Of a DNA stretch of 64,000 nucleotides, positions 32,664-57,500 are shown piece by piece. Source of the stretch: Pavona decussata (lineage: Eukaryota); the NCBI GenBank assembly GCA_977016875.1, contig CDRNST010000086.1, positions 434,001 through 498,000 of the forward strand, written 5' to 3'. Both the position numbers and the translations under genes were made by a program. The first letter of the stretch is position 1; each line of letters opens with the position of its first letter. A model generated the notes under the pieces. The model was not told where the DNA came from. It did not search any database and was given only the letters and a program-made list of their open reading frames with translations.

Positions 32664-32820
32664 AGCCACCGCAATAACTCTGACGTTATTAGCCGAGCTT
32701 TTCATGAACTTGTTATATCTTTAATTTTGTGTTGGGGAAACTACGCATTTCCGTTTCTCGAAGGGATCCATGAGGCGGCTCTTGTGCCTTTTACACACCC
32801 CTTGACCTGTTGACCACTGG

Positions 32821-32886
32821 CACGTGCGCGGAACACACGATATGTCCGAGCGGGACTGGGAACAAATTAGTTCGGGAAGATGGCGG
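32821..32886 (+). promoter_or_regulatory. Promoter motifs of mini-JARID2: E-box and YY1 consensus
   Basis: CACGTG at 32821-32826 and AAGATGGCGG at 32877-32886, in a CpG-richer patch before the ATG at 32954. Confidence 0.5.
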
Positions 32887-32953
32887 GTAATCTTGCATGT
32901 GGTCTTTGTGCTTTCTTCATTTAGTTTGCTTTGGCTTCGCAGTATAGTTCAAA

Positions 32954-35900
32954 ATGGCTGATAAAAGACCCAAACGACAACGGAAAGTGCGTTCCGCAAC
33001 GGTAAGTTGTTTAAGTGAATGTTTTGGAGTATTTAGGTAGATTCGTGAGTGTTGTTTTGCTCCGCGCGGCAAACGTGCTCTCCCAGTGTAAAGCCAGTTT
33101 CAAAACAATGACTTGATAAAGCGAACTTGTAAAAGTTAAAAGTTAGGCCTTGCTCTGCTAATACAACAAGTTCAGAATGAACTTTGGCAAATGTTTGTCA
33201 ATTTTTCTTTAGAATCGATGAATACAATGTACTGAAAGAGGTCGTGTATATTTCGTATTCGAAGCGAAGTATCGATCGCTTGCAATTGTGTGGCATGAGT
33301 GCGAAATCAACAAGTGTCCCAGTAATCGTGAGTTTCAAGTAACCTAAATGTACTTTTCAATCACGGTTTTGAGTGACCTGCATATGTTCAAGAGAAGTTG
33401 CATTCATCAATTAAAAATGATAAAGATTATCAGGACCCTAACATATCAGAGTGTGCGCGAGCCATGGATAATGTAACTTACACCTTTCATTAAGCTTCAA
33501 GTTAAAGCTCTTGGTGTATTTTTAAGGTTTTTCCATCCTTAAGTTAGTCTTTAAGATCTCCTTATTACCCAGCTTTTATTTGTAAAGCACAGTAAGAACA
33601 GGATTGTAAACGTCGCCCAGTTAGAGACCGCTTTTAAGAATTACCGTCTTGTCTCAGGAGTAAAAAGAGACTGCGTGTTCAGATCAATTTATGTACGTTC
33701 TAAATCCAATCATCTCAAAATTAATGTTTGTAATTTAATTCGGAGCTCTTATTTCTGCTTTATGTTTAGCAGGTGAAGGCAAGTTTTAGTCATTAATTAG
33801 TGATTTGGGGATTTGCAAACTCAAGACTTAACTCAACATTTAGACCAAACTATGTTTCTTATTAAATCCAGTAACCAATTATTGGGTTGTTTCTGATTGA
33901 TTTGAGCACTCTTGCTTCTTACCATGGAGAGCAGCGTCCTACGCAGACATTCCTTTGGCTCGTCACGTCACGCACTTTGTGGGGAGAAGTGTGTTAACGT
34001 GACAAGCTAAACAACGTCTGTGTAGGAGGCTACATGGAGAGTGTCAAGAACTTCTTTCAGCAAAAAGGTAAAACAATGTACCTTATGTATACATCATCGT
34101 CATTTGGTTGGTGATACTACCTATGACTACATCTACAGACTCTGAAGTTAAAAACCTCAATAGTTTCCATTTGAATGGTTACACTCTGGGATGATTCTCA
34201 TCTCCAGACTAAATGCTTCAACTATGAGTAACCTTTCAATCAAAGCTAATGAGCACTTTTTTCTAATTCTAGCTCACTTTCTTGAAGTAGAGGATTAACT
34301 TGAATTTAGATCGAATATTTGTACTAGAGTAAATTATATCATGTATTCCATAGGAGTTTTTCGGGGGAGGTCTGTTACACAAAGAAGAAGTAGAATTGAG
34401 GAGGGCACTGCAGGCATCACTGAAAGTAGCTTATCAGAAGAAACAAGAAAAACTTGCTGAACCAGTTGTATCAGCTAGATCTGTTTGTACCAATACCAAA
34501 GCTTTCGAGAAGGAACAAGACAAGCCCGCTGAACCAGTTGCAACTAGATCTATTTGCACTGGCACCAATACGAGGTTTCGCATAAAGTCTTCTGTCAAGA
34601 AGAAACTGAAAAATGCTACAAAGCAGTGTGGGGATTCCCCTGAAAAGAAAAAGAACGGCATCGAGGAAAGAGAAAGTGGAACTTCCCAAGGAACCAGTCC
34701 GGTGTTAACCAAACCGTTGAAGAGAAAGGATGTTGCGGAAATTACTTTTACTTCTGTTAAAAAGAAAAAGAGAGAAAGTGAAAAGAGAGACAAGGAAGGA
34801 TTCCATAAGGGAAGTAATAAAGGATCAATAAAACTGAAAAAAGGAAAAGGTGTTGGAGAGATCACTGAGAGAAGAAAAGATGATGGAAAGAAAATGAAGA
34901 AGTTGTTCAGTGAATCTATTGTACGGAAAGAGCTAAAAAGTCCAGGTAAAACAAGCCAAGTTACACAATCTTCCAAGGGAAAAGAGTTGATGATTCTACC
35001 TAAAAGCAAAGCAGCTGTACACAAGTTACTCAACGACAGAAAGATAAAAGGTCATCAGAAAAGCAAAGTTGTTCAGAGTTTGACTGAGAAATTTAGTGCA
35101 ACTGTAAGAGATGGAAAACAACCAGCTACAGGTTTTATGAAGAAAGATAGTGAAGATCAAATGGATAGAGATTTTAGCAGTGCTAAAATCAAGAAGAAAA
35201 CTGGTTTGCAGAAGGATAAGTTTGAGAAATTAGAACAAAGTTCAGGTCCTTCCAGTGACTCTTCTTGTAAAACTAATAAGATTTGTGAACTGGGACAACA
35301 AGTGTCAAATTCACTGCAGGGAAAAGTCAGAAGAAGACTTAAACATAAGTTTAAAAACAGAAGGCTTGTGAGTCCACTAGGAGAGATCTACATACCAGCT
35401 AATATAGCAAAGACAGAAGACTTCCTGACTTTCTTGTGCTTAAGAGGTAAGTTGGTAAAAGGCAGGGAGTCTGTTCCTTGCAATATAACTATTTTCTGTC
35501 ATGAACATTACCGTTGTCAAACAGACACAACAAACAACTTTACTATAATAACAACAGAAAAACTGACTATCTTCTGCTGTGTGATGAAACCACTACCATT
35601 AGTAAATTCATTAGGACTCATCATCAAGAAAATGTATAAACAGTGTAGTTGGCTTTGTAGAAATCTTTCATCCAGGCAGAACTTCTTAAATGTGTTGTCC
35701 TCCCTATAAGGGAGGCTCCCCCCAAAAGGGGTACCTTTTCCAGGATGGAAGTATATAAAAGGGATTTCATGAGCCGAAGTATAGAAAAGGGTAGGGGGAA
35801 ATTGTCATTTAGGTATTTAAAAGGGCCTTTCAAAATATCTCGAACAGACCCAATGAAAAAAGATAGTGTTTCTACTGTAGGTATGTGAAAGGGTTACCAT

Positions 35901-36655
35901 TTCCTATGGAAGAAAAATGCTTCATCAAAGGGTTAGAGTTTGCACCTTGGGGCAGATCCTCCCCATCTTCCGATTGCATCGCTAGAAATGGTCATGATTA
36001 ACTGTCATCTGCCCTGCAACAGCATCAAATCTGCTGTTTTTGATTGTTTCACATGCCAAAATGAAAAAGCAAAACAATGTTGCACCGTAGGCTGTCTTAC
36101 AAAAATATATGTCAGCTTAAGTTTGGCCAATCATTACATGCAGGTGAATCAGTGTCAGGGACTGTCCCAAAGTTTGGGGAAGGGAGGGTCTTCCTGGTGT
36201 CCTTCCTTCTTTGGGGGTGGGGGGAGGGGTAGAGTGTAAAGATACCATCTGCTTGGATCCCCAAAAAATGCTGTGGATTCCAGTTACTTGGAGTACAAGA
36301 AGCATAACCCCTTAAGCACCTTCAAAGATGCCCAAAAGAAGTTAATGAAAACAATCACCAGCTTTATAGTTCACAGTAATGAGAGTACATCTCTAATTCA
36401 TTAGTCCTGCTAAAGTTATTGTTTAATTGTTTGTTGTCAGGTAATTCCAGTCTCCCAAGATGTTTTGATGTGTTCAACAACCCTGATCCATTTTTCACAC
36501 AGCCAGCTCATGATAGCGATGCAGCAGTGTCCTTTCCAGCTCTTCCAATGCAGTCATCAGTCACTTACTCTCCACCTTCATCAAGTGCACCTAGTGAGTC
36601 TTCAGCAGCTTCACCCATGTCTTCTGTTGATGGCTGGGTGATAAATGAAGACTAA
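32954..36655 (+). CDS. Truncated JARID2 paralog ('mini-JARID2'): UIM, Lys-rich region and PRC2-binding motif; no JmjN/ARID/JmjC; 451 aa
   Basis: Exons 32954-33001 (MADKRPKRQRKVRSAT), 34354-35446 (EFFGGGLLHKEEVELRRALQASLK...KTEDFLTFLCLR), 36441-36655 (GNSSLPRCFDVFNNP...INED*). GT-AG, in phase, 1356 nt, no internal stops. Confidence 0.8.
33932..34032. mobile_element. Short hairpin element ending GGCTA, 9-bp TSD
   Basis: TCCTACGCAGAC / GTCTGTGTAGGA arms; CATGGAGAG on both flanks. Confidence 0.7.
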
Positions 36656-37121
36656 AAATGTCAGGCCAAGTAATCAAGCAAGTCGTGAAGTGTTTTATAC
36701 AAGCTCTAGTGCAGTCAAAATTCTCATCTGTGACCATTAAAAGATGGTTGGGTAGGGCTATGTTCCAATTTACCTGCAAAATACTTGCACTTATCTAAAT
36801 TTGCAGTACGTGGCGGCGCCAGAAAAAATTGCATACTATTCACCACACATGTAGGGATTTCAAAGTGGCATATGCATCCAAAAGTTACCTTTTTCTTTCG
36901 AGTAGGCCCATTATAAACTCTCGTGGATAGGTGGTGCAGATAGTAGGTGCAGTGTGATCAGAAGGTCAATCTGTGTAAATTTTCTCATGGATCCAAACTT
37001 TGGGTCCGGTACAACGTGAACACGCCCTAGAAGAAGTGGTCATTTACGTTGGGTCTAAATATATTAACAAGATGAAACTTGGTGTTGTAGAAAGTGGCCA
37101 TGTAAGAAAGGTGGACCTTAA

Positions 37122-37625
37122 CCCTATCCAGACCAGGCTTTTTTGTGTTTTGGGGGTGGGGTAGGGGGATTCTGCCCCCCTCCATAACTTTGCAACTATT
37201 GAGGCTTGGAGGAGAGATAGTATGTCCAAAGATGTTTCCTTTGAGGTTCGTAACAAGAAGTGATGTCATCTAACGTGGTAATCAAATCATGATTACTAAA
37301 GGCAGCCATCTTGGATTTCCCCAAAACTTTAGGAAGCGCCAAAATTAAGTGAAAAGTAATCAGAACCAATAAAGGAACACTAATAAAATTGTGAGATAAA
37401 AACACAAAAGTTACAGTAAGAATAGTAATTTTTCTTATAAAAAAATGGATTTTCCATTTTCTGAAAAAACCACTTGTCCAAAATTGGTTGTCATGATAAC
37501 ATGAAAGTCAATGAACACTAACCAACCACATCAAATTTTTCCCAGATAAATTTCTGACAAAGTTGTAAAGTTATTCAGGTTCAAAGTCACCATGGGCAGA
37601 ATCCCCTCTGTCCTCCAGTCTAGGG
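37122..37625. mobile_element. piggyBac-like MITE relic
   Basis: TTAA|CCCTA...TAGGG|TTAA ends. Confidence 0.55.
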
Positions 37626-38858: not shown

Positions 38859-40368
38859 TCAGAAAATGACAATGGAGTCATGAAAAAGTTTCCGTACTTT
38901 TGCTTTCAGTTCTGGTATACCTGTTCCATACTTTGCAGATACCGGTATGATGGGTAAAGGCAATGCCTCCGCAATTCTTTGAATTTCATTTTCAGATTCA
39001 ACCATGTCTATCTTATTTGCGACAATTGCGCCTGGTCTTTGTGAGAGCTGCTCCTTGTAAAGCTCTAACTCTTCCCGTAAACATGCAAACGTTGCTAATG
39101 AGTCTTTCTGAGAAACGTCCAAAACGTAGAGCAGGCAGCGACACCTCTCAATGTGCCGCAGAAAAGCATGTCCTAGCCCCTTGTTCAGATGAGCTCCACT
39201 TATTAACCCAGGAATATCTGCCACTAGAAAAGAAAGGATTTACATGTAAGTTGAAAATGTCTTAAAACGGACAAGTTGCAGAGATACAAAAAAGCTAAGC
39301 CTAGGGTATTAACATGCTCTTGAGCTTAGTGACTCACCACTGCTATTACTATTAATATTAAACAGGAAATTCTGGTATCAAAGGGGCCAGGCATGGCCAT
39401 TCTCACCTTAAGTTGTCAACCAATTATCAGAGCTTAAACAACTGACAAACAACAACTCTTAGTGATCAAATTGGCTTAGTTTTGGAATAAACCCTGTTAA
39501 CAGAATTAGAAATCAATGTCTTATATTACTGTGGTGATATTATGAAATTTGAGGCATATTTTTCAGAGGATGCCCAAGTCAACAACGTGCCACGACTGAA
39601 CGATGTCTAAATTTGAATTTTATGCTCAGAAAGGTGTGAGAGGAAGGAGTGGCTTGCCCTTTTTTAGTGGAACTTCTTGTTTAAAAGCATCAATCCAAAC
39701 AGTACTGAACTTGAGGTAGTTTTAAATTTTGCCCAGAATTTGCCCGAGGCATAAAAACAATGGAGCTGAAGGTTACCAGGGTCCAGTGAAAAATAGAGCT
39801 GAGAAGAGGTGTGGGCCTACTGGTACTCTTTACTCCTAATGGGTTGGGTAGGGGCTGCAGCCCTTATATCTCCATCTCCTTGAATCTGCCCAGGCCCAAT
39901 AATTGTTCATTAATTACGTACTGGCATGCACTTTCTTTGTTTGCTGGCATGGAGGGCAACCAAGAAACCTCTACCCAAAGGAAAAAAGGTTGTGGTTGAA
40001 TTTTATCAGACTATAAGTATACATTTATGTTTCAGCCTTACACCCTGTTGGAGGTGAACTGGACGAGTGAGTGATAATTTTATGTCATCAAAAAATTACG
40101 TGTACTGTACCTTTTGTCTGACCAATCTAAGTGAAGTGTGAGTCAAATCAACATCAAACTGGGTTATGTTATGTACCTGCAATCTGTGAGTAATCTTCAA
40201 ACTCCAATATGCCAACAAAAGGATTTATTGTGGTAAAAGGATAAGCAGCCACTGCTGGCTTGGCCCTGGAAATTGCTCTCAAAAGAGTAGACTTGCCAGC
40301 ATTAGGGAAACCAACCTGAAAAGTACAATCAGGCCTGGCTCTTAAAAATAAACACTATCATTTAACAA

Positions 40369-40411
<43 letters not shown>

Positions 40412-43400
40412 ATTCTAGTCAAAGGTTTGTTAACCATCCCTGCTCCCCTAGTTCTAACTAATTAGTTAGAACTAGGGGAGCAGGGATGGCGCAGTGGTGA
40501 GAGCATTTGTCTCCCACCAACGTGGCCCGGGTTCAATTCCCGGTGTTGACGCCATGTGTGGGGTGAGTTTATTGTTGGTTCTCATCCTTTCTCCGTGAGG
40601 TTTTTCTCTGGGTACTCAAGGTTTCCTCCCTCCACAAAAACCAACATTCCCAAATTCCAAGTAGACCAGGAAACAGTGGATGAAAGATCTACTCTGTGGA
40701 AGCCACTGAAATTCCTATTTATTTATTAGAGTCAATTATGAGAGTTCATGACAGTATGTAGTCAAACCACAGCAAATGCCTGAATTATTGGCAGGTCAAA
40801 AAAACCTTTTTTCTCGTTTCATTTTACAATGTACAGTAGTTATTCTGTCCATCTCCATTTCTCAAACTAACCAAGCCAATATCAGCAATGGTCTTCAGTT
40901 CCAACTCCACAACTTTCTCCTCTCCAGGGGTCCCCTCAGTGTGCATTTTGGGAGCTTGATCCAGTGCTGTCTTGAAGTATGCATTTCCAAGTCCACCCAG
41001 CCCTCCCCTGGCAGCTACAAATGTTTGTCTCTCAGCTGTCAAGTCTGCTAAAACTTCACCATTTGCCTTAACCACTGTTCCGAGAGGAACCTGGTAAATA
41101 CAATCATGTTATTGTAAGAAAACAACAGTACTAATCAATAGTCTAATTACCGGAGAATTTATAATTTGCAACAAAATGTCCCAAGTTATACATACTTATT
41201 GTAAAAACACGAAAGGACCATAGGCCTATCAATAATACCTAAACCTCTGGTCGTAGGAATGAAAATGTTGTGGCCTTATCATCAATACCTGAACCTAGTT
41301 GTCAACATTTCAGACTGAGAGTTTAGCTGACAAGAAGCAAAATGAAAGACCTTTGAAAACTGCAAAACTTCACACAAACCCAGCTTGTAATTTTGCAATT
41401 TATTGATAAGTTTAGCCAATCCATAGAAGCTGTCTGATTTTCAGTCTGTTATTTCAAAACTCTGAGCTTATTGCATTCAACGTAGGAAGAACGCCTTCCA
41501 AATACAGATTGGAGTCAAGATTGCATGTATGGGACAACGTTTATATTTGCCGGAAAGAATGGATGGATCTTGGGATGTGTATCTGGCATCCCCCGCAGAT
41601 TTTTTTTTGCAGGGGCGGATGACATCATCATCAACTTGGCAAAGGAGGGAGAGTCTGGGATCGAGATCATCGAACGCACTCCCTAATCTTTGATTATTAA
41701 TAGTAGGTATTACCTGGTATTTAATACATATGTTAACAACAAAAGTAATTTTATTGAAGCAAGACCACTGTAGTTGGGTAGGCAACTTCAGCAGTTGCAA
41801 AAAGAAAACCTGAAAAATTCAGGTTTGAATGGGATTCAAATCCATGGCCACTGGAATTCCTGTGCTGTGGTCAACCAACTAAGCTATCAAGCCAACTGGG
41901 AACTAGTCATTTTGTGAGTTGACGGTTCATAATACGCCCATGGTCGCCTGTGAACATGGATGTATTTCCGGCTGAGAGAAGCAACAGCCGGAAATATGTC
42001 TATGTTCACAGGCTACACCATTGGAGGTCATCAATAACAATAGTTGAATATTATTTTCATTTTACGTCAAATTCAAAAACAAGTAAGACTACTGATATAA
42101 CTAGTCTAAAAGGGATTCACCTCAAACATGCGATCTGAGCCATTCTTGCCCTTACAATCCTCGCCTTTACCAGCTCCACCATTCTCTGCTTTGATGTGCT
42201 TAGGAAGGTGAGCAAACTCCTTTACAGAGTAATCTGCAACCAGAACTACACTTCCTCCATGGCCACCATCACCACCATCAGGGCCAGCTTTTGGCTGGAA
42301 TCTACATTGTAACAAATGTATGAACATCATAAACTGAAGTTAACATTACAGTCATATGGTTCTTCCTTGGATTACTGAGGCGGGAATTGGTGGGCAAGAC
42401 AAAACAGTAATTAAAATTTAATTATTTTTCAGAAATTATGTGAATCATGGGATTACCATTTTAATCATAAAGAGTTTAAGTTACACATGCAATTGCCTCA
42501 TTTATCAGTTGAAGAATTTTTGGCATGACTAGCATGAGTGCCTTTTTTTGCCTTGAAATAACAAGAAATAGCTTATTACTTTTCTTGAAAATGCAAGCGA
42601 CTCACACAAAAGAGATACCAATACTCGACTGTTTCCTTTCTGCATGAGACAGATAGAGCCCTGCATGCAAGCCTGAGCCGGAGACCGAATGAACCATTTG
42701 TGTTGTGAACAAAAGAAATCAGTCCAGTGTCGGTATCGCACAATTTTGTGACATAATTTTTACATAACACCACCATTTTCAATAAAGGCATTGTTGGACT
42801 GCCATTGTAGAATGTACTTGTGCTTTATAATTTCTCATAGATCTTCTTCTGTCAAAGTTACTGGTTAAAATCCCCAACAGAATTTTTGTGCATTGGACAA
42901 CGAAAACTTCTGATTCCCTTACAGAAACCAAACCCAAGACCTTGCATAGCTGCACAGGGAGACCCATGGCAAGCTAGGATGCATGTATATAAAATTTTTG
43001 TAAATAATTTTAAGCATAACTGTATGTACTAATTAGTACTTATTAAATTATTATTTCTAAAATATTTAAAAACTGGTTTAAAAAACTCTTAAAGCAAACA
43101 TAAATTATTGTAAAGACACTGAAATTAAAGATGTCTCAACCTAAGAGCTTGTCTCAACCCAGTTCATCCTGAATCCTGGTTTCAATTTAGTATTTTTCAT
43201 AAGGTACTTACTTTTTCCTCCTGAAGTGAACACACCCATTGCCACCATCTCCTGCCTTGAGAACTACTTTCTTCCAGTCTATAAACTGTCTCTCCTATTC
43301 CAAAATATAAAAGAAAAATATTTACAGTCAAATGAGAAATGAAACAGTGGCAATTAACTGCATGAGAAATTAATTACTATTAACAACTTTTTATATCACC

Positions 43401-45370: not shown

Positions 45371-45584
45371 TGCTCAGGCCTAACAAGGCTAGGCTACCAA
45401 GTAAACAGGCGTGGCTACTAATTATGAACCCGCTGACCTGTCAACAACCCGCAATAAAAAAGAGTTGTTTACAGATCGAATGAGCGCTGAAAAGTATGGA
45501 GGCAAAGTACACGTGGTCCCGATTTTGTTTCCTAACTGGCATGCCAATAACAGTCAAATTTAACAGCTAGTGGCCTAGAGAAGA
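45371..45584. promoter_or_regulatory. Bidirectional promoter MTG2 / JARID2
   Basis: Divergent ATGs 214 bp apart; CACGTG at 45510-45515; YY1-like AATGGCGGC over the JARID2 start. Confidence 0.7.
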
Positions 45585-48500
45585 ATGGCGGCGGAGCGCC
45601 CAAGGCGAAGGATAACACAGCCGTGCTTGGTATGTAAATGGGTATTGCTTCAACGCGCGATTTCGGCAACTTCAGTGAATTCAAAGGCTTACGTGTTAGT
45701 TTCTATCGGAAAGATGGGCGTTATGTTTCTCTCCTTGCTGTTAATGTTGTGGTTCCATAATGTGGCTTGCTTGGTGTGTCGCATTTCCGAGTGAAGCAGC
45801 TGTTCTTTTACGCCATTTCAACACCAGAATCGTGAGGTCTCCATTTAACAGCGCGAATAATAGCGTTTCGTTTTCAAAACACACTCGATTGGTTTTATTT
45901 TCACCATATCGAAATCTTAAACAGGTTTTCGGGTTTAGCTGTCTGCTTCTTGGGCTAAAGTACAAGAGGAACAATTTCCTGCGTCTTTGTGATATTTAGG
46001 TCAAAGAGGAAAAGCACCATGCATTCAATTTGAAATTTCTATTAAAAGTTAATTAGCTAGTAATACCCTGTCGGACTCGAAAAGAAAACATAAAAATCCT
46101 CATTTTGACAATTCTCTGGATGTTTAGCCGCTTTATGAAATGTTATAAGCCCAGTTGAAAACTTTGAGTTGTTTTTATAATCACTTACTTGAATATTTAG
46201 TTTTTATCTCATTTGTGTCAAACAATAAACAGCTGCCGTCGGTAATGATTATCAAGAATCGAGCAAAGAGAGGCTGTCTCAATACCTTTTGTTTGGTGAT
46301 AAAATACTGCTGAATGTACTAATGTTAATCACTTAAGCCTAAATACTTCTGTGTTTATTGTCTTCGTTAAAAAAAGACTACAAATGGATAAAAGCTTAAT
46401 CCAACAGGGGTTAAAAAATTTTAACTTTTAAAGATACAAGACCATAATGTTACAGTTGACTAACAAAGCGGAAGGTTCCATCAGCAGTACTCGTAAATGT
46501 TTGCCGACAAGACTGTTTGCAGTATTCGGATCTTCTGTATTTGCCTTCATGAAGGCAACTTTTTATCAAAAGGTCCCTTTAAAAATAGGGCCTTTCATAT
46601 TTAAAGCTCACAGCTAACTTGTAGATTTTTGCAACAGTATCCAGAATTTATTGATCACTATGGTTTCATTAATTAAGGAGCTATTTAGTGACCCTTGAAG
46701 TTTTAGAAGTGTGTACCTTTTAGAAGAGCTTCTAAAGTACTTGTATCTCAGCATGAAGTCAAGTTTACCCTTCGAGCCTGAGATGATATATAAAAAGCAA
46801 CGCTAAAGGTTGTGCAGGTGTATAATATATATTAATAAAAGTTATCAATTCTGTATCTAGAAAGAAGGAGTGTTCCATTCCCTGTCCTTAAAAGGGAAGT
46901 ATCACTTGACCTTTTATCATGAAAATGGTGTGCAACATCTTCACTTACTAGTTACAAAATAATTCTAGAACATCAAGAAAAAGAAATCAACTGAATTCTT
47001 GAAGGGAACAACTTCATGGCCTGCCCTTAGCTAGTGTATTTTGGGAACGAAAATGGGAGAACTTGAAAGCAGTTAGCCTAACTGTTTTCAAGTTGCATTC
47101 CATTCTAACCCAGTCATCTGTGGCCAGAGACACTTACAAATAGATAAATAAGCAATACCTTTAGGTTTCTGTTGATAAAAAAAAAAAACATTTTGGAGTT
47201 TTTGACATAACACCAAATTCCCCTGATACTTCCCCTTTAAACCTTTATATAATAGATACAGTGATTTAGATCAAACAAACCACCTGTTGAGATTCACTTT
47301 CGATCCATTATTGGTGAAAAGCAATATAAATTATGTATCAGGGGTGCTCCCCTATGTAAGGTATTCTTGGTTTGCAAATGATGTCACCAAAACTGTGAGA
47401 CCTTCAAAATTAAGTTTTATCTTCATCAGGGGTAACTTGATTACTGTACCTACATCTTTTACAAGTTTTCAGCTCGATAGCATCCTACATGTTTGTACCT
47501 TTTAAAATAGAACAAGTCATGTAGAATTTTTCAATGTTTTCACCTTATGTGGCATCAAGATGGCAGCCATGACAGAGCTGTTTCGTGTGTAAAAAATGAT
47601 GCTCCTCTGGTAATTTCTAGCATTCTTAACAATTAAAGTATTTGGAATTTAGGTATTTATGTGAAAATTCACAAGTTCAAAAGAGAATTAGTAACTGCTT
47701 CTGTAGCAAAAAGTGAATTCCAGATGTTTTCATTAATTTCTGGCCACCATGTTAGATCTGGTGTCCCTCGGAGGGAAACCAATGTGGTGTCTCGATACTG
47801 AGCTCTATAAATTTGTGTGGAACATTTTGACAAGCATGGGATGCTGCACCGACCTGAGACTTAAAACAATATTGTTCATTTGTTTTTCTTCTATGACATT
47901 TCAACTTCTTTCACTTCGTGAAAAACAGCAAATATTAGGTATGTGCGGCCCCAAAGGGTGTAGATTTTAAGCTGTTGTCTGAAATAGGGTATAGATTTAA
48001 ACCCTTTTTGTCTGAAAGTTAGAAAACTAGTATGTAAACTATCTGAAAATGGGGATGAATTTGAGAGGCCAGGTCTGACAAAGGGTCAGGAGTACATCTC
48101 TGTGGATTGATTCATTTATGTATGACAAAATGGTGTAACATGTTGTTGAAGAAAATATCCATCCCTTTCAGTGGAAGGTTCTTTCTATTTGGATACCTTT
48201 ACCCCTCTGAAAGTTCCAGTGTAAAGTTTAGTTTTAAGTTGGCTTACTACAGTTTTTGTACCACTATCAAGCTTAACATGCACGCTCTCCAAGACAAGAA
48301 AGCACCACGTGTACAAAGTGACGAAGCCAGCTGATGAAATCCCGCGAACACACAAGCTGTTATTTTGTGGGAAAATGCCGGAACACGAAGGCAGCATTCA
48401 CTCACCAGTTGGAGCGCATGCACGATGGAACCCGGGTTTTCCCTGAAAGAAGCATGTGCAATGGCTTTCTCACCGTAGGTCGCGATGACCATTTTTTCTC

Positions 48501-51500
48501 GCTTTCTTTCTCCAAATCTTGCTGTACAACCTACGTTCAAATTTTTGCTGTTCACAGAAAACACTAAAACAGAAACGTGAACATTTTTTAAAGAAAATTT
48601 ATCAGAAATTTTTTTAAGAATTTTCAAATAAGGCAAAATTCCACAATGTCGTAATTTGCCAAATTTCTACCTTACAGAATTATGTGTGCTTCCCTGTAAA
48701 TACTTATTTTTGGCCATTTTCCAAATCCTGAAATTTTGAAGTGGGGTCATACAAGTAGATTTAGAGCCAGACAACTCTAAAAGGTGTAGCTCCCATGCCC
48801 CCGCTAAAGACTCGTTCTACTGTATTGGACTCAAAATTATCTCCATTGTATTTATCTTTGTAGAAAAAATCTTCAAGAAAACTCTGACCTGTTAGCATTA
48901 TCCTAAGTTTGATTCAAGGCCTGTTTTCGCCCCAGAAAACTGTAGTAAGCCACCTTAAAAATGTTGGCTTTTGTAGATCTCAATGTGGAAAGATGGGTGG
49001 GTATGGGTATTTTGTGGAACAACACTTGACAAATTAGGTGAAATAAATATCTCACCGAAAAAGTTATCAGCCCACCCAATGTTAGTTAAACCTCATGAAA
49101 TTCCAGGCACCATTTAGACAGTCACTTGAAGTGGGAGTAGTGGTGACTGATTGCACATTCTTCTGTTCTTCTTGCACTGTCAACCGGTAACAAACTGTAC
49201 AGGTCTACACTTTTCTTTGATTTCGTCTCCCTCCATTTTTCACAATTCAGTGTTGTTTAGAAACTTATGTACGGTGCAAAACACTTTGCATTCCTTGCCC
49301 TGTCCAACACTGTATGGGGAAAAGGGGCTATTTACTATTAATTATTAATACAGAGTAACTCCAGAAAAGGTAGAGGATCTAAGGGGGTAATTGTGATGGT
49401 CATTTTTTTTTAAACCACATAGAAATTACATGAACATGACAGTGTATGAAATTGGCTGTTTTTCAGGGAGTTAAATAATCAATTCTTACACAAAAACCAA
49501 GATCTTTGGTTCACATACATGTGCATGTGTCCTGCCAAGTCTTTTCTCTCTTTTCTTTTTCTTTAATAATTATTATCACATACAGGTGTACACTGTCATT
49601 TGTGACCAGCCATAATTAGAGAGCATTTGGTCATTAAAAGCTCTTCGATCTACGGTATTAATAAATGTTTGATGCCAAGCAACATAACTGAAACCATCGG
49701 TGTGACGATATATATTGATATTTTAATTAATAATGTTCTCTTTTCTGATATATAGGAATACAATGGAGGCCTTCTGCATAAGGAGGAAGTTATGTTGCGT
49801 AAGGCTATGTATGCCTCATTGCATGAGTCCAAGAGACCTCTTACAAAGCTTCCCAATGAACTTTCAACAACAAGCAGTGAAACATTAAGCAGAAATGGCT
49901 CTCACATTTTCACTGTTGTTGATTCCAAGGAAGAAGAGTTAATTAGCAAGCAACATGTCTCTCCCGATGAGCTTGACAACAATAATGGTGGCAGTGAATC
50001 TGGAAAAAACATTGACCCAAATCATCCCTCCTTGCAGGCTTACCCTGAAATGAAAAAGAAGTTGAAAATATCAAAGGAGCCAAGCAAACTTCTTAATTAT
50101 GTCATCAAGAAAAAGAAGGAGAAAAGAACTAATTCAAGAGCTTTGATCAGAACTCTGTCACCAACTAAACTTTCAGGGAATGCTGAAACAGGTTTCCCTG
50201 GTTCTTTGAATGGGAAATCGAAAAAGAAAAAAAGGAGGCAAAGAGGAGCGCTTGCTGTATTTGTTGCCATGAATAAGTCAGCAGGTGGAAAAATATTGAG
50301 TAAAAATCATTTCTCTAAGCCAGAGAAAGAACAACTCTTAAAATCTAAAAGGAAGAGAAGGAGGAAGAGGAAAGAATTTGAGAATGAAATTTGCAGTCAG
50401 GGTGATGGTGCTGGTGTTGGAAGTGAGGAATCACCACCCAAGAAATCCAAGAAAGAAGACAAAAAGTAAGTTCTGTTAGCTGTAAATTTATTACAGATAC
50501 TTTTGAATAGGACTTATTCTATTTAAACAAACTTGACTGTGTAAATTTTGTTGAGGGGCTTAATTAGCTGACAGTTTGCCCCAAAGAGCTACATGTATGT
50601 TGTGGTTCAATTTTATCCTTGGTTTAAATTTTATTTTTCTTTGTTTTAAACCCATTATCATTACGTTTTCATAACCAAGAACAATAGAAAGATAAAATTT
50701 AAACCAAGGATAAATTTCAACCACAACATACTTACTTGTAAGTTTTTAGAACATCAAATTGGCAAGGGAATCTATCAGACAGTGCATTACCCCTGAGACG
50801 GAAGCACTCTTACTACTATCTTTATTGTTGAACACTACCAAATCTTCTTCAGATTCAGAACAGATCTATATATGTATGAATATAATTGGAATGAAATTTT
50901 GACCTGTTAGGCAAACAGTTGAAATAAAAAAGGCATTATACCTTTATCACTCAGCGGCCATGTTGAGTCTTGGGGGAATAAAAAGCTTTGTTTTCGCATG
51001 GCAAGCATCGACTAGCTAAACAGGAATTCAGTGCGAGGCTTGCCATGCAAAAACAAACTAAGCTTTTTATTCTCCTGAGACTCAACATGGCAGTCGTGTG
51101 ATAAAGGTCTATTGGAAAGAAATAACTTAGTACATTATAATGAAAGCACCCTCCTTGTAGTGAATTAAAAATAAAACAAATGCATGACATGGATTTATTA
51201 CTACTTTTGCACCGTATGATCAGTTAAAATCAATAAGACTAGAAGAGAGTTAAGTGATGAACTATAAGAGCAATAACTTGAACTACATTTGTTATTAAAA
51301 TAAAAAAACATTTCACCAGCAAGTGGTAAATGAAAGGTGTTCCTTCAGGAGCATTTTAATCAAATTAAATGAATCCCAACTTGTCAGACCTATTGGAACT
51401 GTTATTACTTGTTATTGTTACAGGTATCATTAAGTAAACTGTAGCTTGGGAAAAACTATGTATTACTACATGTAATGGCTGCTGTGTAAATTATATCCCT

Positions 51501-54500
51501 TGCGTGGTCAGCACGTAATAAATTGATTTTACCTTTGTCCCGCTCAATCCACAGGTAGTGACAGTGCATAAACAGAGCTTGCAGGATTAAGATCCATTTT
51601 CACAAATCAAAGCAATGCTAACTCTAGTCCACCACGAGGTCACTCCTGGTTTTTGCTTAGTGTAACTGATAGTCTCCTGGAACCCTGGCTTGTTGTTTTG
51701 TACATTTGTTTGTAAAGCAGAGTTCTAAACAATATGATGCAATGTTTCTTGTCTGAAGCTACATGCATTATATATGTAATGTTGGAGATAATCCCAAACA
51801 CTGTCCTTTAGAATTTGGAAGTGTTGAAACTTGTGCATATTTAAACACTAGACCCTACACATCCTGATGGTGCCTTCATAACCCCTTAATAAGCCCTGAT
51901 ATCAACAGGTATATTCCCATCATTCTGCTCCATATATTTCTTTTGGTAAAAGTTTGGAGAATGTCGCCTTTGTGATTATTGTTTCCTAAATATTCTTGTG
52001 ACTCATATCGGTCACTGTTTGTTTTTAGACTAGGCAGAATGGTGCACGCTCAGAGGAAATTTGCCAGGACACATCCACCGAGTCCGTCCAGGTAGACCCT
52101 GCAATTTTGCTTTACAGTTAATTGTGCTGCAACAATAAACTGCAATATCAGCGTATTGTGGTATTAATTTTTTTCACACAAATATATGAATACCAATAGA
52201 AGAACAGGGATACAAAATGAATATGATTACAGTGCCCTAAATACATCTTTCTTTTATATTAATTACTGTTTACAAAAACAGGAAGATAAAGGCTCTGCAC
52301 CTTCCTCCCCCGACCCAAGAAAAAAATACTGGTAAAAAATATATTTCATTTGGGAATGCTGTCTTGTACCCAAGTATGAATTTCTTCAGACTTTCAGTTT
52401 CAGTGGTAGATGAGTTTATGAAGATATATGTCCAGAAATGCAGGCAATGACGAAAATTGTTAAATTTGACGTTATTTTGCCAGCAACCAAAATTCAGGCG
52501 AATGAGCTCAAGAGAATGGTACCAACAAAGTGGTGAATTTGTCAAATACAGCGAATTTGGCAAATATGGCGAATTTGATGATATTTTGCCAAGGCCAAAA
52601 TTCAGGCGAATAAGCTCAAGAAAAGGGTACTAACAAAGTGGCGAATTCAATGAATACGGCAAATTTGGAAAATATTGGAAAACAGTTTTTTAACTCCCCC
52701 ACAGATCAAAGCAATTTACTGCTCGATAAATAAATAACAGCATAAAATTAGAGAAAATATACCCAAAACTGAAAACAGTATAACTATATAAAATAGGCTA
52801 GATTAGATTGTGACCTGAAAATTGGCGCCCATGTTTAATGTCAACACCTTTTCTGGACCATCACATGCATTTTATTTATTTCAGAACTTGGAATTTGAAA
52901 ACTGTATATATTATATTAATCTTCTTCAAGAAGAAATGATACTTGCTTTGTTTAATCTATAAAAAAAAATAGTATGTTTATAATTTTGCTATAATAGCTG
53001 TTTTGAACCTTGATCCTTGCCTGCATTTCTGGACATAAGTGGAGAACAGTTATTAACAGCTTGCTCATGACACAAAGTCTGTGAAATATCAGTGGAAAAG
53101 AAAACTTTTTTTCCTTTTTGGATCTTCTTAAGTCTGCCACACACTAGCTGATTTTTTGTCGTCCGAAGAAAAATCTTCACTTGTTGGCTAGTGTGCAGTA
53201 AATTCAGACAAGTCTGCGACAAGATCAGGGCTTGGCAGGCGATATCTGACAGTGCTAGATCTCAAACCGTCTTGTTGGGCCTTGTCAGCTAGTGTGCGGT
53301 GGACCAAGACAATTTGTCGGGGCTCGCGCGCGCCTCAACCAATTAGGAAATGTCATGAGAGTCATGTGAACAAGCGTCTTTTCCAACACGCCGGAGGTCG
53401 AAGCTGAGATCAGCGCGGAGATCTTAAGATAATCGGAAGTACCACTGAAACCCAGTCGGATCTTCGTTCCCAAGCTCTTGAATTAGGTTGTTATATACAC
53501 CTTGTTCATTTCGTCTGGTAATCCAGCTTTTAACCCATGTTGTTCTTGTGCTGCTTTTGTGATGCCTCTTTATCCTCTATAGAAAAGTCAAGGTAAACAA
53601 AGCAAGTTTCAATTTTTGCCACGTCAGTGGAATAGGCGCCATCTTGATTTTGGATGACTCGGCCCCAAGCCTCAACGTAGTTACTGTAGTTGCGACAAAA
53701 AATCCGCTGGTGTGCTGCAAGCTGACGGCCAGACAAATTTTAACCCGATTTGACCCCAACAAAAAATCTGCATTTCTTCAACAAAAAATCGGCTAGTGTG
53801 CGGCAGCCTTAAACTTGAGGTGCAGCTTATGTACAAGTGTGGTCTAATTCTGCAAGTGGTTAACATAATACTATGTCTTGCTTTTTAACTTCAGTAAAGT
53901 TTGCTTTTTACTTGTAAATTGTTGCTGTTTAAGAACCATAGATTTGGGTTGCACAGTGAAACATTATAATAGCCCTTTTCATTATGGGCCAGCATAGCCA
54001 ATAGAATGAAAACCTTTGGAACTATCTTGAGGGTCTATGCTTAGAAGCACGCCAACGCACATCAGAGGCAAATGTCATGTGTCAATAATATTGTGACCCC
54101 ATTAATTTTCCTCTTACGTAAGTTGGCAATGTACTCTGGAGTTAACAGTTTGCGATGGCGTTCTTCAACTTTGAAACCAACCAGCTGAACATTCTGCCTG
54201 TTGCGGCATAGGTCAGGTCTCCATGACGTTTTGTTTGTGGTAATTAATTTTAGTAAATATTATAATTACGGCCTCTAAAATTATGTGTTTATTTCATTAT
54301 TTTCTCTCCAGCATTAAACTTAAGGAAGACAGAAATTTGTTGTCGTGTTCTTTAACAAGAGCCAAGACTGAGGATTTCTTGACCTTCCTTTGTTTAAGAA
54401 GTAAGTAGCATACATGTACATCCCAACAGTACTGTCGTCATCTCACGTTGACCAGTCCTTTCAACGAGAGCTCGGAGGCACAAACTATGTGTGACTACTG

Positions 54501-57500
54501 TGAATTTTAGTCCACAAATTTCAATGATGGCATTTTGTACAGTCTACTATATGAATTGAAGGGCTGAGAGCATAACTGACCTAAATGCATTTTAGATCAC
54601 TGTTTGTTTTTTTAACTCAGATTCACCTGAGTTTTTGCATGTGGCCTTGAATTTCTTCAGGAAACGTTGTTCCAATGTTTTATTCGCTGCTGTTCACTTT
54701 GTTTTGTGATAAAAATGGACATCTTGCCCATAATGATAGGTTTACATGTGTAACTGCAAACGATTTGCAAAGCAGCAGATAAAATTCAAAGCATTCAAGG
54801 CCAAATGTAAAAACTCTGGTGAATCTAAGCTAAAATGACAAAAGCAATCGGAAAAATCATTTAGGTTGGTTATGCTCTCAGTCCTTCAATTACTCATGTT
54901 TACTAGTCTAGATCTGATGAAATGCTGATAAGTGTGTGATCATCAGACAAGTATAATTTTTTAATGCTATCATAAATACCCTTCACTGGATAAGTATCCC
55001 ATTAAGGGGGAGTAGTAATGCTCATTTGTTTCATCGTGCTACAGAAAATGGTTTTAGGTTCCCGTGATCATGAGCCAGTAGAATATTGAAGACACTACAT
55101 TGTACGTTGCACAGAACTGTTGTTAATGTTTCAAACTTTTTGTTGCAGATAATCCTGTCCTGCCTAAAGAGCTTGAGATGTTCAATAATCCTTGTCTACC
55201 AATGTCACCCTTATCAGACAACGATGAGGACATTTCGTCGCCACCCTCCCCCACCCAGTCCCAGTCATCAATGTCAAATTTCTCAAACCCATCAAGTACA
55301 TGTACCGTCCAAAAATCCTTTTCTGACTCCCCTGCCCCATCCGTGGACAGTCCAGCCACGGGAGAAGGGCCTTCTTGGGAGAGTGGAGTAGTAAGAATGT
55401 ACGCCGATGGTCCCAAGGGGCTTGCTGGCAAGGACAAAGAGCAGAAAAAATATGACGAGTTTCTACCAAGCGATGAGGCTGATGTGAGTGATTATTTTTT
55501 CTTGATGTGTGAATATTAACTGTATATGGGCAGCGCAGTGGAACCTCACATTCCAACCGCCCCTTTATTTCGACCAGCTATGATAAACGCAGTCACATCT
55601 TTTCAGCGCAGACTGTTCATAACTTATGCAGCCATTTTCTTATCTGAAAGCACTAATCCAAGCGCCCTGGGCCGAGTTGTTCAAAGCCTGATTAAGCTAA
55701 TCCTGGGTTAACGTGAACTTTGGTTCGAGTATATGTTACTAATCCGTAAGGATTTCTCCAAAAGATTTTGCCCCTCAGTTTTGCCTTAGACTTTTCTTTA
55801 CCATGAGATTAAAATGAGCCTTTAAAATTATCTTTAACAAGCGAGTTGAAAACCTCGGTTAACTTTTAATCATGGATTAGCGTTAATCGGCTTTCGAACA
55901 ACCCGGGCCTGCTCTATCAAGGAGGTTCTTCTGTACCATGTTCACTCATTCAAGTTTAAATCATACACTCATTCTTTTTATCAGTTACAACATGTCACCC
56001 TTACCCTTTATTGCCGGTATCAACTCGCACCCTTCTCAAAATGTGTCACAAGCTGGCACTTGTGTCATGTATGCTCAATCATTTGCTACTTCCTTCACAT
56101 TGGAGTTTTGTTTGTGTATAGGTTTGAATCTTTCATAGATTTCCATCACATACTCTGTGCACAGGCGTGGTTAACCTTTAAATCCTATTTTACAATAATG
56201 ATCAAAATTCCTGCATGCTGATTTACTCATAGCTATTGTCTACAAGAGCACAGACATTAAAATTACATCAGATGTGCACTTTCTCAACAGAAAATAAAGC
56301 CAATTCCGCTCATACTATTTCCATGTTATTGGATATGATCTGTACTCTTATAGACCATAAAATGTTCAAAACTTGGCAGTGAAACCACTCACCGCACCGT
56401 TTTGGACATTTCATGACGTCATTTTATGGTCAGACCATAAAAAGTTGCTGTTGATTTGTTTATTATCAACATGAATAATTATTCTCCCTGCTTCACTCCA
56501 TATATTTCTTTTGGTATTATTTGGCAGAATTTGGGTTAAACATTAACAGATTTTATCTTTGGTGATCATTTCCTATATTCTCACCACTTTTATGTTTGAC
56601 TAAGCAGTGATACTGTAAGAAGAAGTTAGAAATTACATGTTTTTGTGCTTCATACCACTGTTTCATTATTTTTCATGAATTTTTCAGAATTTGGATACCG
56701 TCCAAATATAATTTGAATTCAAAGAAGTACCTCTTATCATACTGATTATTTAATAACTTATTGTCCGTAAAGAATGCAGCAACATTGTGTGAATAATCAC
56801 TTGTACTTTAAATTGTGCATTTTATTACCAGCTGCCAAAAGAATCATATCACCGAATTTCGATTCTGTTGTGTAAAATACCAATAAACGTAAGATGCTCC
56901 GAACGCATTTGCAATGTTGTTACTGATCAAAGCTAGCGTAAGTGGTATCTTGTTTTCAGTTGTTGACTGTTATTAGGTAACTTCCATTTGCTTATTCTAT
57001 TTTATATTTCATAAACTCACAAGTTACCACTGTTACTTGTAATACTGAGTTAAAAATCTGCTTGTACATCCAACGGTTGCATTGCAATTGATTTTGTTTT
57101 CAATGCCTTGCAGTGTGAATTCATTAAACGCGTTGATTTTTGAAAAAAAATGTATTGTGTCAGTTACGTTTACTTCACCTGATATTGAACTTGTGTTGAA
57201 GGAAATTAAGTATAAAATTTAGATTAAAACATTAAAACAACTAAAACCTGTTTCCATATGGCAATTTTAATTGTTGGCTAATTGAAGATGTAGTTACTGT
57301 TTTTGCCAACTGGACGCCTTCCTAAGTATGTACATGAATCTCAATACTGTAAAACGACATCAAGTATCAAGACGTGTGGAAACGTTTTTTTTTTTTTTAA
57401 TTTTTATTTATTTTATTTATTTATTTTTTTTTTACGGTTAATGAAAAAGACTACCTCAAGAGGATGTTAATGCGACAGGAAAAGTAAAATGCTAACTGGA

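Follow-up and report, generated by a model that had tools for sequence, protein, structure and literature searches.

A stand-alone short JARID2 paralogue of stony corals, probably a lineage-specific Polycomb cofactor

Accessory subunits of polycomb repressive complex 2 (PRC2) set the place and the strength of histone H3 lysine 27 trimethylation (H3K27me3), and one of them, JARID2, is the closest described relative of the gene analyzed here, a short JARID2 paralogue carried on the plus strand of a 64,000-nucleotide stretch of the Pavona decussata genome (GenBank assembly GCA_977016875.1, contig CDRNST010000086.1, positions 434,001 to 498,000 of the forward strand; hereafter the window, numbered from its first letter). 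The ubiquitin-interacting motif (UIM) of JARID2 binds ubiquitin and nucleosomes carrying histone H2A ubiquitinated at lysine 119 (H2AK119ub), and in mouse complementation the N-terminus of JARID2 is by itself enough to bring PRC2 back to H2AK119ub, in a UIM-dependent manner (PMC5133711). The TR motif of JARID2 sits in the ZnB-Zn/AEBP2 groove of SUZ12, where JARID2 and EPOP compete, and JARID2 trimethylated at lysine 116 (K116me3) binds EED and activates PRC2 (PMC6672058); EED reads a methyl-lysine together with the next aromatic residue (10.1101/2020.05.28.122556). A first-pass annotation of the locus had treated UIM reading of H2AK119ub, docking on SUZ12 and the sufficiency of the N-terminal region for PRC2 binding as established, and all three are documented in the first two of these sources.

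The N-terminal region of human JARID2 (residues 1 to ~170) and the short coral protein present the same elements in the same order, namely a basic RPKR, the UIM, a basic stretch, KTEDFLTFLCLRG and LP..F..P. The short protein differs from JARID2 in being the product of a separate gene, in stopping 70 residues past the TR motif with no JmjN, ARID, JmjC or zinc finger, in carrying RRRLKHKFKNRR in place of VHAQRKFA, and in having conserved motifs of its own and an unrelated middle. A PRC2-binding front split from the chromatin-binding back, with competition proposed, is known from Delta-N-JARID2 (human keratinocytes, PMC6356158; dragon lizard, PMC9020659), but Delta-N-JARID2 is the reciprocal half, which keeps the Jmj, ARID and zinc-finger regions and loses PRC2 binding, and it comes from the single JARID2 gene, as an isoform or by cleavage. 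Delta-C-JARID2, produced by intron-15 retention in reptiles (PMC9020659), is also C-terminally shortened with the PRC2-binding front kept; it is a splice variant minus the terminal zinc finger only, whereas the coral protein has its own gene and no folded domain.

By analogy, the short protein also resembles PALI1/2, EPOP and EZHIP, in that it appears largely disordered, is lineage-restricted and would act through short peptides. The peptide of EPOP is directed to SUZ12, the methyl-lysine plus aromatic of PALI1 to EED, and that of EZHIP to the EZH2 active site. These proteins are unrelated to JARID2 by descent (PALI1 has been described as convergent), whereas the short protein is a true, coral-restricted JARID2 paralogue. 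To our knowledge, nearly all known lineage-specific PRC2 subunits (PALI1/2, EPOP, EZHIP) come from vertebrates; the short gene is a cnidarian case with a clear origin, and holds exactly the JARID2 portion that suffices for PRC2 recruitment dependent on ubiquitinated H2A in mouse. Among 8.4 million papers and preprints, none turned up that describes the gene, whether it was sought through JARID2 in cnidarians and corals or through its RefSeq identifiers (locus and protein); gene models are already present in RefSeq and GenBank, only as "uncharacterized", "hypothetical" or under mistaken names.

Gene model and transcripts of the short gene

The short gene is a three-exon, 451-residue open reading frame (ORF) at 32954-36655 (+; 1356 nt in total) in which every junction, read by hand on the sequence, is GT/AG. 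Its stop codon and the start codon of canonical JARID2 (45585, same strand) are 8.9 kb apart, in agreement with the intact ORF ~9 kb upstream of JARID2 that had been claimed in the first-pass annotation. The coding part of exon 1 (32954..33001, +; 16 codons, phase 0) encodes MADKRPKRQRKVRSAT, a JARID2-type basic N-terminus that is conserved in orthologues and is a probable nuclear localisation signal. Intron 1 (33002..34353, +; 1352 nt) is followed by exon 2 (34354..35446, +; 364 codons plus 1 nt), which encodes first the UIM, then a lysine-rich disordered middle, a basic stretch and the TR motif. The UIM (34369..34422, +; GLLHKEEVELRRALQASL) fits the consensus of an acidic run followed by L..A...S. 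The middle of exon 2 contains 21% lysine (isoelectric point (pI) 10.1) and two copies of a repeat unit, AEPV..RS.CT.T (34456-34497 and 34528-34572, +), the second of which holds a family-conserved CTGTNTRFRIK block; both the lysine richness and the repeat had been pointed out previously. A block specific to the short family, LQGKVRRRLKHKFKNRRLVSPLGEIYIPANI, lies at 35314..35406 (+), and its HKF (35344-35352) is equivalent in position to the K116 motif of JARID2. The SUZ12-docking TR motif, AKTEDFLTFLCLR(G) (35407..35446, +), closes the exon. Intron 2 (35447..36440, +; 994 nt) precedes the coding part of exon 3 (36441..36655, +), which encodes LP..F.VFNNPDPF and then a serine-rich acidic tail (exon 3 pI 4.05) ending in SPMSSVDGWVINED, with the stop codon at 36653-36655.

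For domain and structure analyses, the window exons were searched singly and full-length analyses were run on the orthologous proteins returned by the searches. Pfam returned no Jmj or ARID domain in the window exons or in the full-length orthologues, and the ORF ends at 36655 without the full-length JARID2 set of JmjN, ARID, JmjC and C5HC2 zinc finger. AlphaFold2, supplied with an alignment of eight orthologues, gave a mean pLDDT of 42 and three predicted helices only (orthologue P0008 numbering): the UIM at 25-43, KSKVVQSLTEKF at 254-263 and DFLTFLCL at 371-378. The protein is thus predicted to be a disordered string of short linear motifs. A feature search of the ESM Atlas with the Acropora orthologue gave best scores of 0.76-0.84, which is chance level.

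Transcription was followed in Logan contigs from four runs of four studies, all carrying the organism label of the window, which were placed on 32700-36900. The joint 33001|34354 (GT..AG) was present in all four runs, and the joint 35446|36441 (GT..AG) in three of the four. Intron depth was essentially nil, with intron 1 skipped in every run and with a dispersed repeat within intron 2 (35661-35942) as the exception. The 5' untranslated region (UTR) is marked at 32882..32953 (+) by contigs that open at 32882 and 32889, ~70 nt 5' of the ATG, and includes AAGATGGCGG. A 1252-nt contig (X2 record 11) joins exon 2 to exon 3 and reads through the stop codon to 36900 and 367 letters further, giving a 3' UTR of at least 36656..37267 (+); poly(A) signals are found at 37368 and 37382. 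Since this contig continues past the stop codon, exon 3 ends in a 3' UTR with no splice to the Jmj exons, and the mRNA of the short gene stands alone. The transcript that the first-pass annotation had called for was therefore recovered with its three exons spliced as modelled, and the obligatory splicing into downstream Jmj exons that it had named as a refutation does not occur.

A processed retrocopy was considered as the source of the spliced contigs and ruled out: a profile of the family matched the 602-Mb genome at the window's own intron-containing locus only, so that the gene is single copy and a retrocopy cannot explain the joined form. In each of the four runs, contigs pile up on the intron 2 repeat (~35661-35942) to 10-20x the depth over the exons, with numerous loose ends; the element, which is SINE-like (short interspersed element) and expressed, also occurs elsewhere in the genome.

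Orthologues and comparison with canonical JARID2

Searches with exon 2 returned 48 short homologues of 244-497 residues, many of which are full-length spliced products (390-456 residues, contigs of 1.4-2.5 kb) that share the N-terminus, the UIM, the TR motif, the exon 3 block and a C-terminal ...SPMSS.DGW..N-acidic-stop. Acropora, Montipora, Porites, Stylophora, Oculina and Desmophyllum all conserve the C-terminus and have the stop codon in the same position. Database entries include the uncharacterized proteins of Acropora palmata (XP_074616190.1), A. millepora (XP_029184460.2, LOC114952643), A. muricata (XP_067055656.1) and Stylophora pistillata (XP_022781075.1, LOC111322264), an unnamed protein product of Porites evermanni (CAH3030931.1), the hypothetical proteins of Porites harrisoni (KAM7450153.1), Oculina patagonica (ACROYT_G011801) and Desmophyllum pertusum (OS493_004884), and proteins of Montipora capricornis (XP_068721349.1) and M. 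foliosa (XP_068693702.1) named "titin homolog". The Montipora names are wrong, an artefact of the Lys/Glu-rich low-complexity middle. Genes that coral annotations list as "uncharacterized protein" or "titin homolog" thereby gain a name and a testable function.

These orthologues span the complex and robust coral clades, the split of which is dated to at least 245 million years ago (PMC5730576); the short gene has been kept as a gene of its own since before that split. In a maximum-likelihood tree of the exon 2 region, Acroporidae (100/100), the Porites group (100/100) and robust corals (86/73) were recovered, and the tree follows coral families, the pattern that a single vertically inherited orthologue would give. 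A profile search against 1.84 billion representatives gave 12 clusters at E <1e-30, all of the short type; canonical JARID2 proteins (Nematostella XP_001638542.2, Xenia XP_046842849.1, bilaterian) were matched weakly, through the TR motif. No short orthologue was found in Nematostella or Xenia in searches confined to annotated genomes, so that absence there is unproven.

Gene order supports the same grouping, in that three-exon layout, termini and synteny with an Obg-family GTPase and JARID2 are shared. The GTPase (MTG2; ORFs at 38859..42330, -) lies between the short gene and JARID2 in the window as a neighbor only, and the Pfam families GTP1_OBG and MMR_HSR1 match the syntenic GTPase genes at five further loci (L001, L002, L005, L006 and L007). 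The order short gene, minus-strand Obg, canonical JARID2 is found both in an acroporid-like locus (L002) and in a deeply divergent one (L007), as expected from the prediction that a pair of JARID2 motifs would flank MTG2 in other anthozoans. In Oculina (L001) the order is PARP(WWE-WWE), BTB-Kelch, short gene and minus-strand Obg. The L007 exon 2 has 208 residues and its branch measures 2.7 substitutions per site, with three exons and the conserved tail all kept. Used as a query, this exon 2 returned itself and nothing else, and the bHLH gene next to it in L007 had no match above 33% identity, the one named match being from Desmophyllum (31%). Disrupted orthologues had been named as grounds for rejecting the gene; the orthologues are intact.

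The comparator for the window was the set of canonical JARID2 5' exons (45585..55483, +), with exon limits placed by eye on the basis of GT/AG sites and reading phase: exon 1 (45585-45629), the UIM exon (49756-50465), the K116 micro-exon (52029-52091; VHAQRKFA, 63 nt), the TR exon (54312-54400) and the FNNP exon (55149-55483), all on the plus strand, with JmjN following near 61.6 kb. A six-frame motif scan found each shared motif twice, on the plus strand: RPKR at 32966 in the short gene and RPRR at 45597 in canonical JARID2, GLLHKEE at 34369 and 49768, EDFLTFL at 35416 and 54370, and FNNP at 36473 and 55181. These pairs substantiate the shared basic N-terminus, UIM, identical TR and LP/FNNP reported in the first-pass annotation. 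Its statement that everything outside the motifs has diverged also held: BLASTP of the short protein against the canonical one returned the UIM (E 3e-7, 15/21 identical), a marginal exon 3 match (E 0.037) and nothing else; hhalign aligned the UIM alone (probability 96%); and the best blastn match of the short gene to the canonical locus had an E of 0.04, similarity at the DNA level being gone. A pairing made by eye, KLLN...SLT.KFS with canonical KLLNYVIKKKK...IRTLSPTKLS, had no BLASTP or hhalign support and was dropped.

The two copies agree in the position and phase of three exon boundaries, namely the phase-0 end of the RPKR exon, the opening of the UIM exon and the phase-1 junction that follows FLCLR. 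From the UIM to TEDFL, canonical JARID2 has three exons (49756-50465, 52029-52091 and 54312-54400) where the short gene has one; the canonical K116 micro-exon (LGRMVHAQRKFARTHPPSPS) is flanked by phase-2 introns, both of which are absent from the short gene. Since the UIM-to-TR region is a single exon in the divergent L007 as well, the intron difference is old. Sequence comparison indicates that the short gene originated when the 5' exons of JARID2 underwent a partial tandem duplication long ago, and that it has persisted throughout stony corals as a single-copy orthologue.

Within the TR motif, the canonical copy (54361-54399) is matched at 13 of 13 residues and human JARID2 at 12 of 13, and the motif is invariant in all orthologues compared. 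Eight of its 13 codons differ from those of the canonical copy, all synonymously; saturation of synonymous sites around an unmoved peptide is the most direct sign of selection at the locus. In a search of the PDB, KTEDFLTFLCLRG..LP was the only coral stretch to match solved chains, these being human JARID2 in PRC2 structures determined by cryo-electron microscopy (6c23, 6c24, 8tb9, 9dch and 9c8u). The short protein thus has both the N-terminal UIM and the KTEDFLTFLCLRG-then-LP arrangement of the JARID2 N-terminal module. A K116-type motif (A-Q-R-K-F-A) was not found: the short gene reads KHKFK, and orthologues read HKL, HVL, QRL or QKL. Outside the HKF-bearing lineages the K116 equivalent is KL, VL or RL, and allosteric activation is therefore no conserved property of the family.

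Constraint along the gene was measured as the ratio of nonsynonymous to synonymous substitution (dN/dS) by the Nei-Gojobori method, with the window and its 96%-identical relative L005 each compared to L006 (~83% identical) and the window also compared to L005; splice sites and reading frames are all intact in these two nearest relatives. Against L006, dN/dS was 0.05-0.07 in the UIM, 0.16-0.17 in exon 3, 0.33-0.43 in the last 64 codons of exon 2 and 0.57 in the lysine-rich middle. Against L005, the UIM showed no amino-acid change, the middle gave 0.68, and exon 3 gave 0.62, a value that carries little weight as it reflects three differences only. Low values in the UIM and exon 3 and high values in the middle are as predicted from the claim that selection had preserved the motifs. 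An alignment of eight full-length orthologues further contained conserved blocks that have no counterpart in JARID2: CTGTNTRFRIK, LQSP, KELKILPKSK, KSKVVQSLT.KF, K[ND]R[RK]LV.PLGEIYIPAN directly 5' of the TR motif, and the tail QSSV.YSPPSS...SPMSS.DGW. The PLGEIYIPAN block is present in every scleractinian orthologue compared; the K-F pair is not. We are highly confident that this is a real gene on which selection acts.

When compared with L005, exon 2 of the window is more diverged (5.5%, dS 0.08) than intron 1 (2.1%) or intron 2 (4.0%), and many of the exon 2 differences are specific to the window relative to the RNA contigs, L005 and L006 jointly. This excess could be due to the fast-evolving disordered middle, or to separate exon and intron histories.

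Proposed function and alternatives

The short gene is probably an undescribed lineage-specific Polycomb cofactor, and we infer its association with PRC2 solely from a TR motif identical to that of canonical JARID2. In the proposed mechanism, the TR peptide would take the same ZnB-Zn/AEBP2 groove of SUZ12 as JARID2, which would make its binding mutually exclusive with that of full-length JARID2 and the short protein an alternative PRC2.2-type subunit; SUZ12 is present in this genome and is expressed in a coral metatranscriptome. The UIM would read H2AK119ub, and the lysine-rich middle would stand in for JmjN, ARID and the zinc finger by lending unspecific affinity for DNA or nucleosomes. PRC2 would thereby be targeted to, or retained on, chromatin carrying ubiquitinated H2A with little or no allosteric stimulation of the JARID2 type, which is expected because the family lacks a family-wide K116-type methyl-lysine motif, and competition would modulate JARID2-PRC2. 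Judged from sequence comparison, this mechanism as a whole, a weakly or non-stimulating PRC2.2-type subunit competing with JARID2, falls just on the probable side.

Several observations weigh against it. The UIM in single copy falls under the 21-bit cut-off of Pfam PF02809, with 12 bits for the window exon and 15.1 bits for the Acropora orthologue. Single 17-residue motifs often score below Pfam thresholds, and an orthologue with three UIM copies (P0005) reaches 40.3 bits, above the cut-off; its tandem units suggest selection for ubiquitin-binding avidity. Even in JARID2 the affinity of the UIM for ubiquitin is weak, above 1 mM (PMC5133711). A K-F pair (HKF) is carried by the window species, acroporids and some other lineages, for which allosteric activation is conceivable. 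The invariant PLGEIYIPAN adjoining the TR motif could alter or redirect its partner. With respect to expression, the RNA nature of the runs is a guess of the tool, and the contigs are ~3-6% diverged from the window in exon 2; since 28 of 40 listed contig variants are common to L005, the transcripts come from closely related individuals or lineages and are not provably those of the window's haplotype.

A bolder reading is offered tentatively, and its full set of claims is rather doubtful. Stony corals would have a two-gene JARID2 system in which the short paralogue is a dedicated PRC2.2 subunit coupling PRC2 to the H2AK119ub deposited by PRC1 without the allosteric 'jump-start' or DNA-binding domains, its own motifs would recruit coral-specific partners, and it would amount to a separation-of-function allele fixed for >245 million years. 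The gene offers a natural experiment on a JARID2 front end separated from the Jmj, ARID and zinc-finger body, on the dispensability of the K116 switch and on crosstalk between PRC1 and PRC2 outside bilaterians.

The best-surviving alternative, which we nonetheless regard as unlikely, is that the short protein is a pure decoy or inhibitor that would occupy the SUZ12 groove with no activation or productive targeting and titrate PRC2 away from JARID2 as a natural dominant negative. Such a role would fit the missing canonical VHAQRKFA together with a K-aromatic pair that is not family-wide, the absence of JmjN, ARID, JmjC and zinc finger alike, and the known competition of JARID2 and EPOP for one SUZ12 surface (PMC6672058). 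For a decoy, however, the TR motif alone would suffice, yet the UIM is the most constrained part of the protein (dN/dS 0-0.07) and is tripled in P0005, and the additional family-specific motifs and exact C-terminus are also conserved, which points to further partners and a positive function. A pure decoy is therefore less likely, because selection holds the UIM and the private motifs most tightly; these motifs, overlooked in the first-pass annotation, argue for more than a simple decoy.

Improbable to a greater degree is a PRC2-independent role, in which the protein would be a ubiquitin-binding chromatin or nuclear scaffold whose TR-like peptide and new flanking block bind some other partner. 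PLGEIYIPAN, CTGTNTRFRIK, KSKVVQSLT.KF and the SPMSS.DGW tail, none of which has a counterpart in canonical JARID2, would be at home in such a scaffold, as would the complete divergence of the remainder of the protein. This role is hard to square with a TR motif that is identical to that of JARID2 in the same genome and matches the human one at 12 of 13 residues across saturated synonymous sites, because a frozen TR implies a fit to the conserved SUZ12/AEBP2 groove. A third possibility denies the locus the status of an independent functional gene and makes it either a partial duplicate in decay or alternative 5' exons belonging to the JARID2 unit. It would draw on the short distance to JARID2, which follows 8.9 kb downstream in the same orientation, on the fast middle (dN/dS 0.57-0.68) and on a divergence of exon 2 that exceeds that of the introns relative to the closest relative. 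It is close to refuted by an ORF that is intact and has its stop codon unmoved in both major coral clades and at five other loci read, by strong constraint on the motifs, by a contig that crosses the stop codon into the UTR, by an opposite-strand gene in between and by separate gene models in RefSeq.

Further observations on 5' ends, the canonical UIM exon and gene order

The first ~25 nt of the short mRNA (GGCGGGTAATCT.GCATG...; 32878-32910, +) are conserved with positions 1-30 of L003, where they open the transcript of a coral with a protein just 35% identical to the short one (L003/L004). The AAGATGGCGG of the short-gene 5' UTR is presumably a promoter-proximal element with a YY1/Pho-type core. 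The start of canonical JARID2, GAAGAATGGCGGCGG (45580-45595), looks like the same element with its ATG used as start codon, and the duplication may have carried along some of the parental promoter or start.

In the canonical UIM exon, a block at 50224-50292 (+), KKRRQRGALAVFVAMNKS.GGK, is near-invariant in the window, L002 and L007 and is absent from Nematostella JARID2. Its 'AMNKS' resembles the H3K27 context AARKS and may represent a candidate second PRC2 pseudo-substrate. A PARP with tandem WWE domains precedes the short gene both in Oculina (L001, 1-3720) and in the window (~4.8-16 kb), so that synteny across coral families extends from PARP to JARID2.

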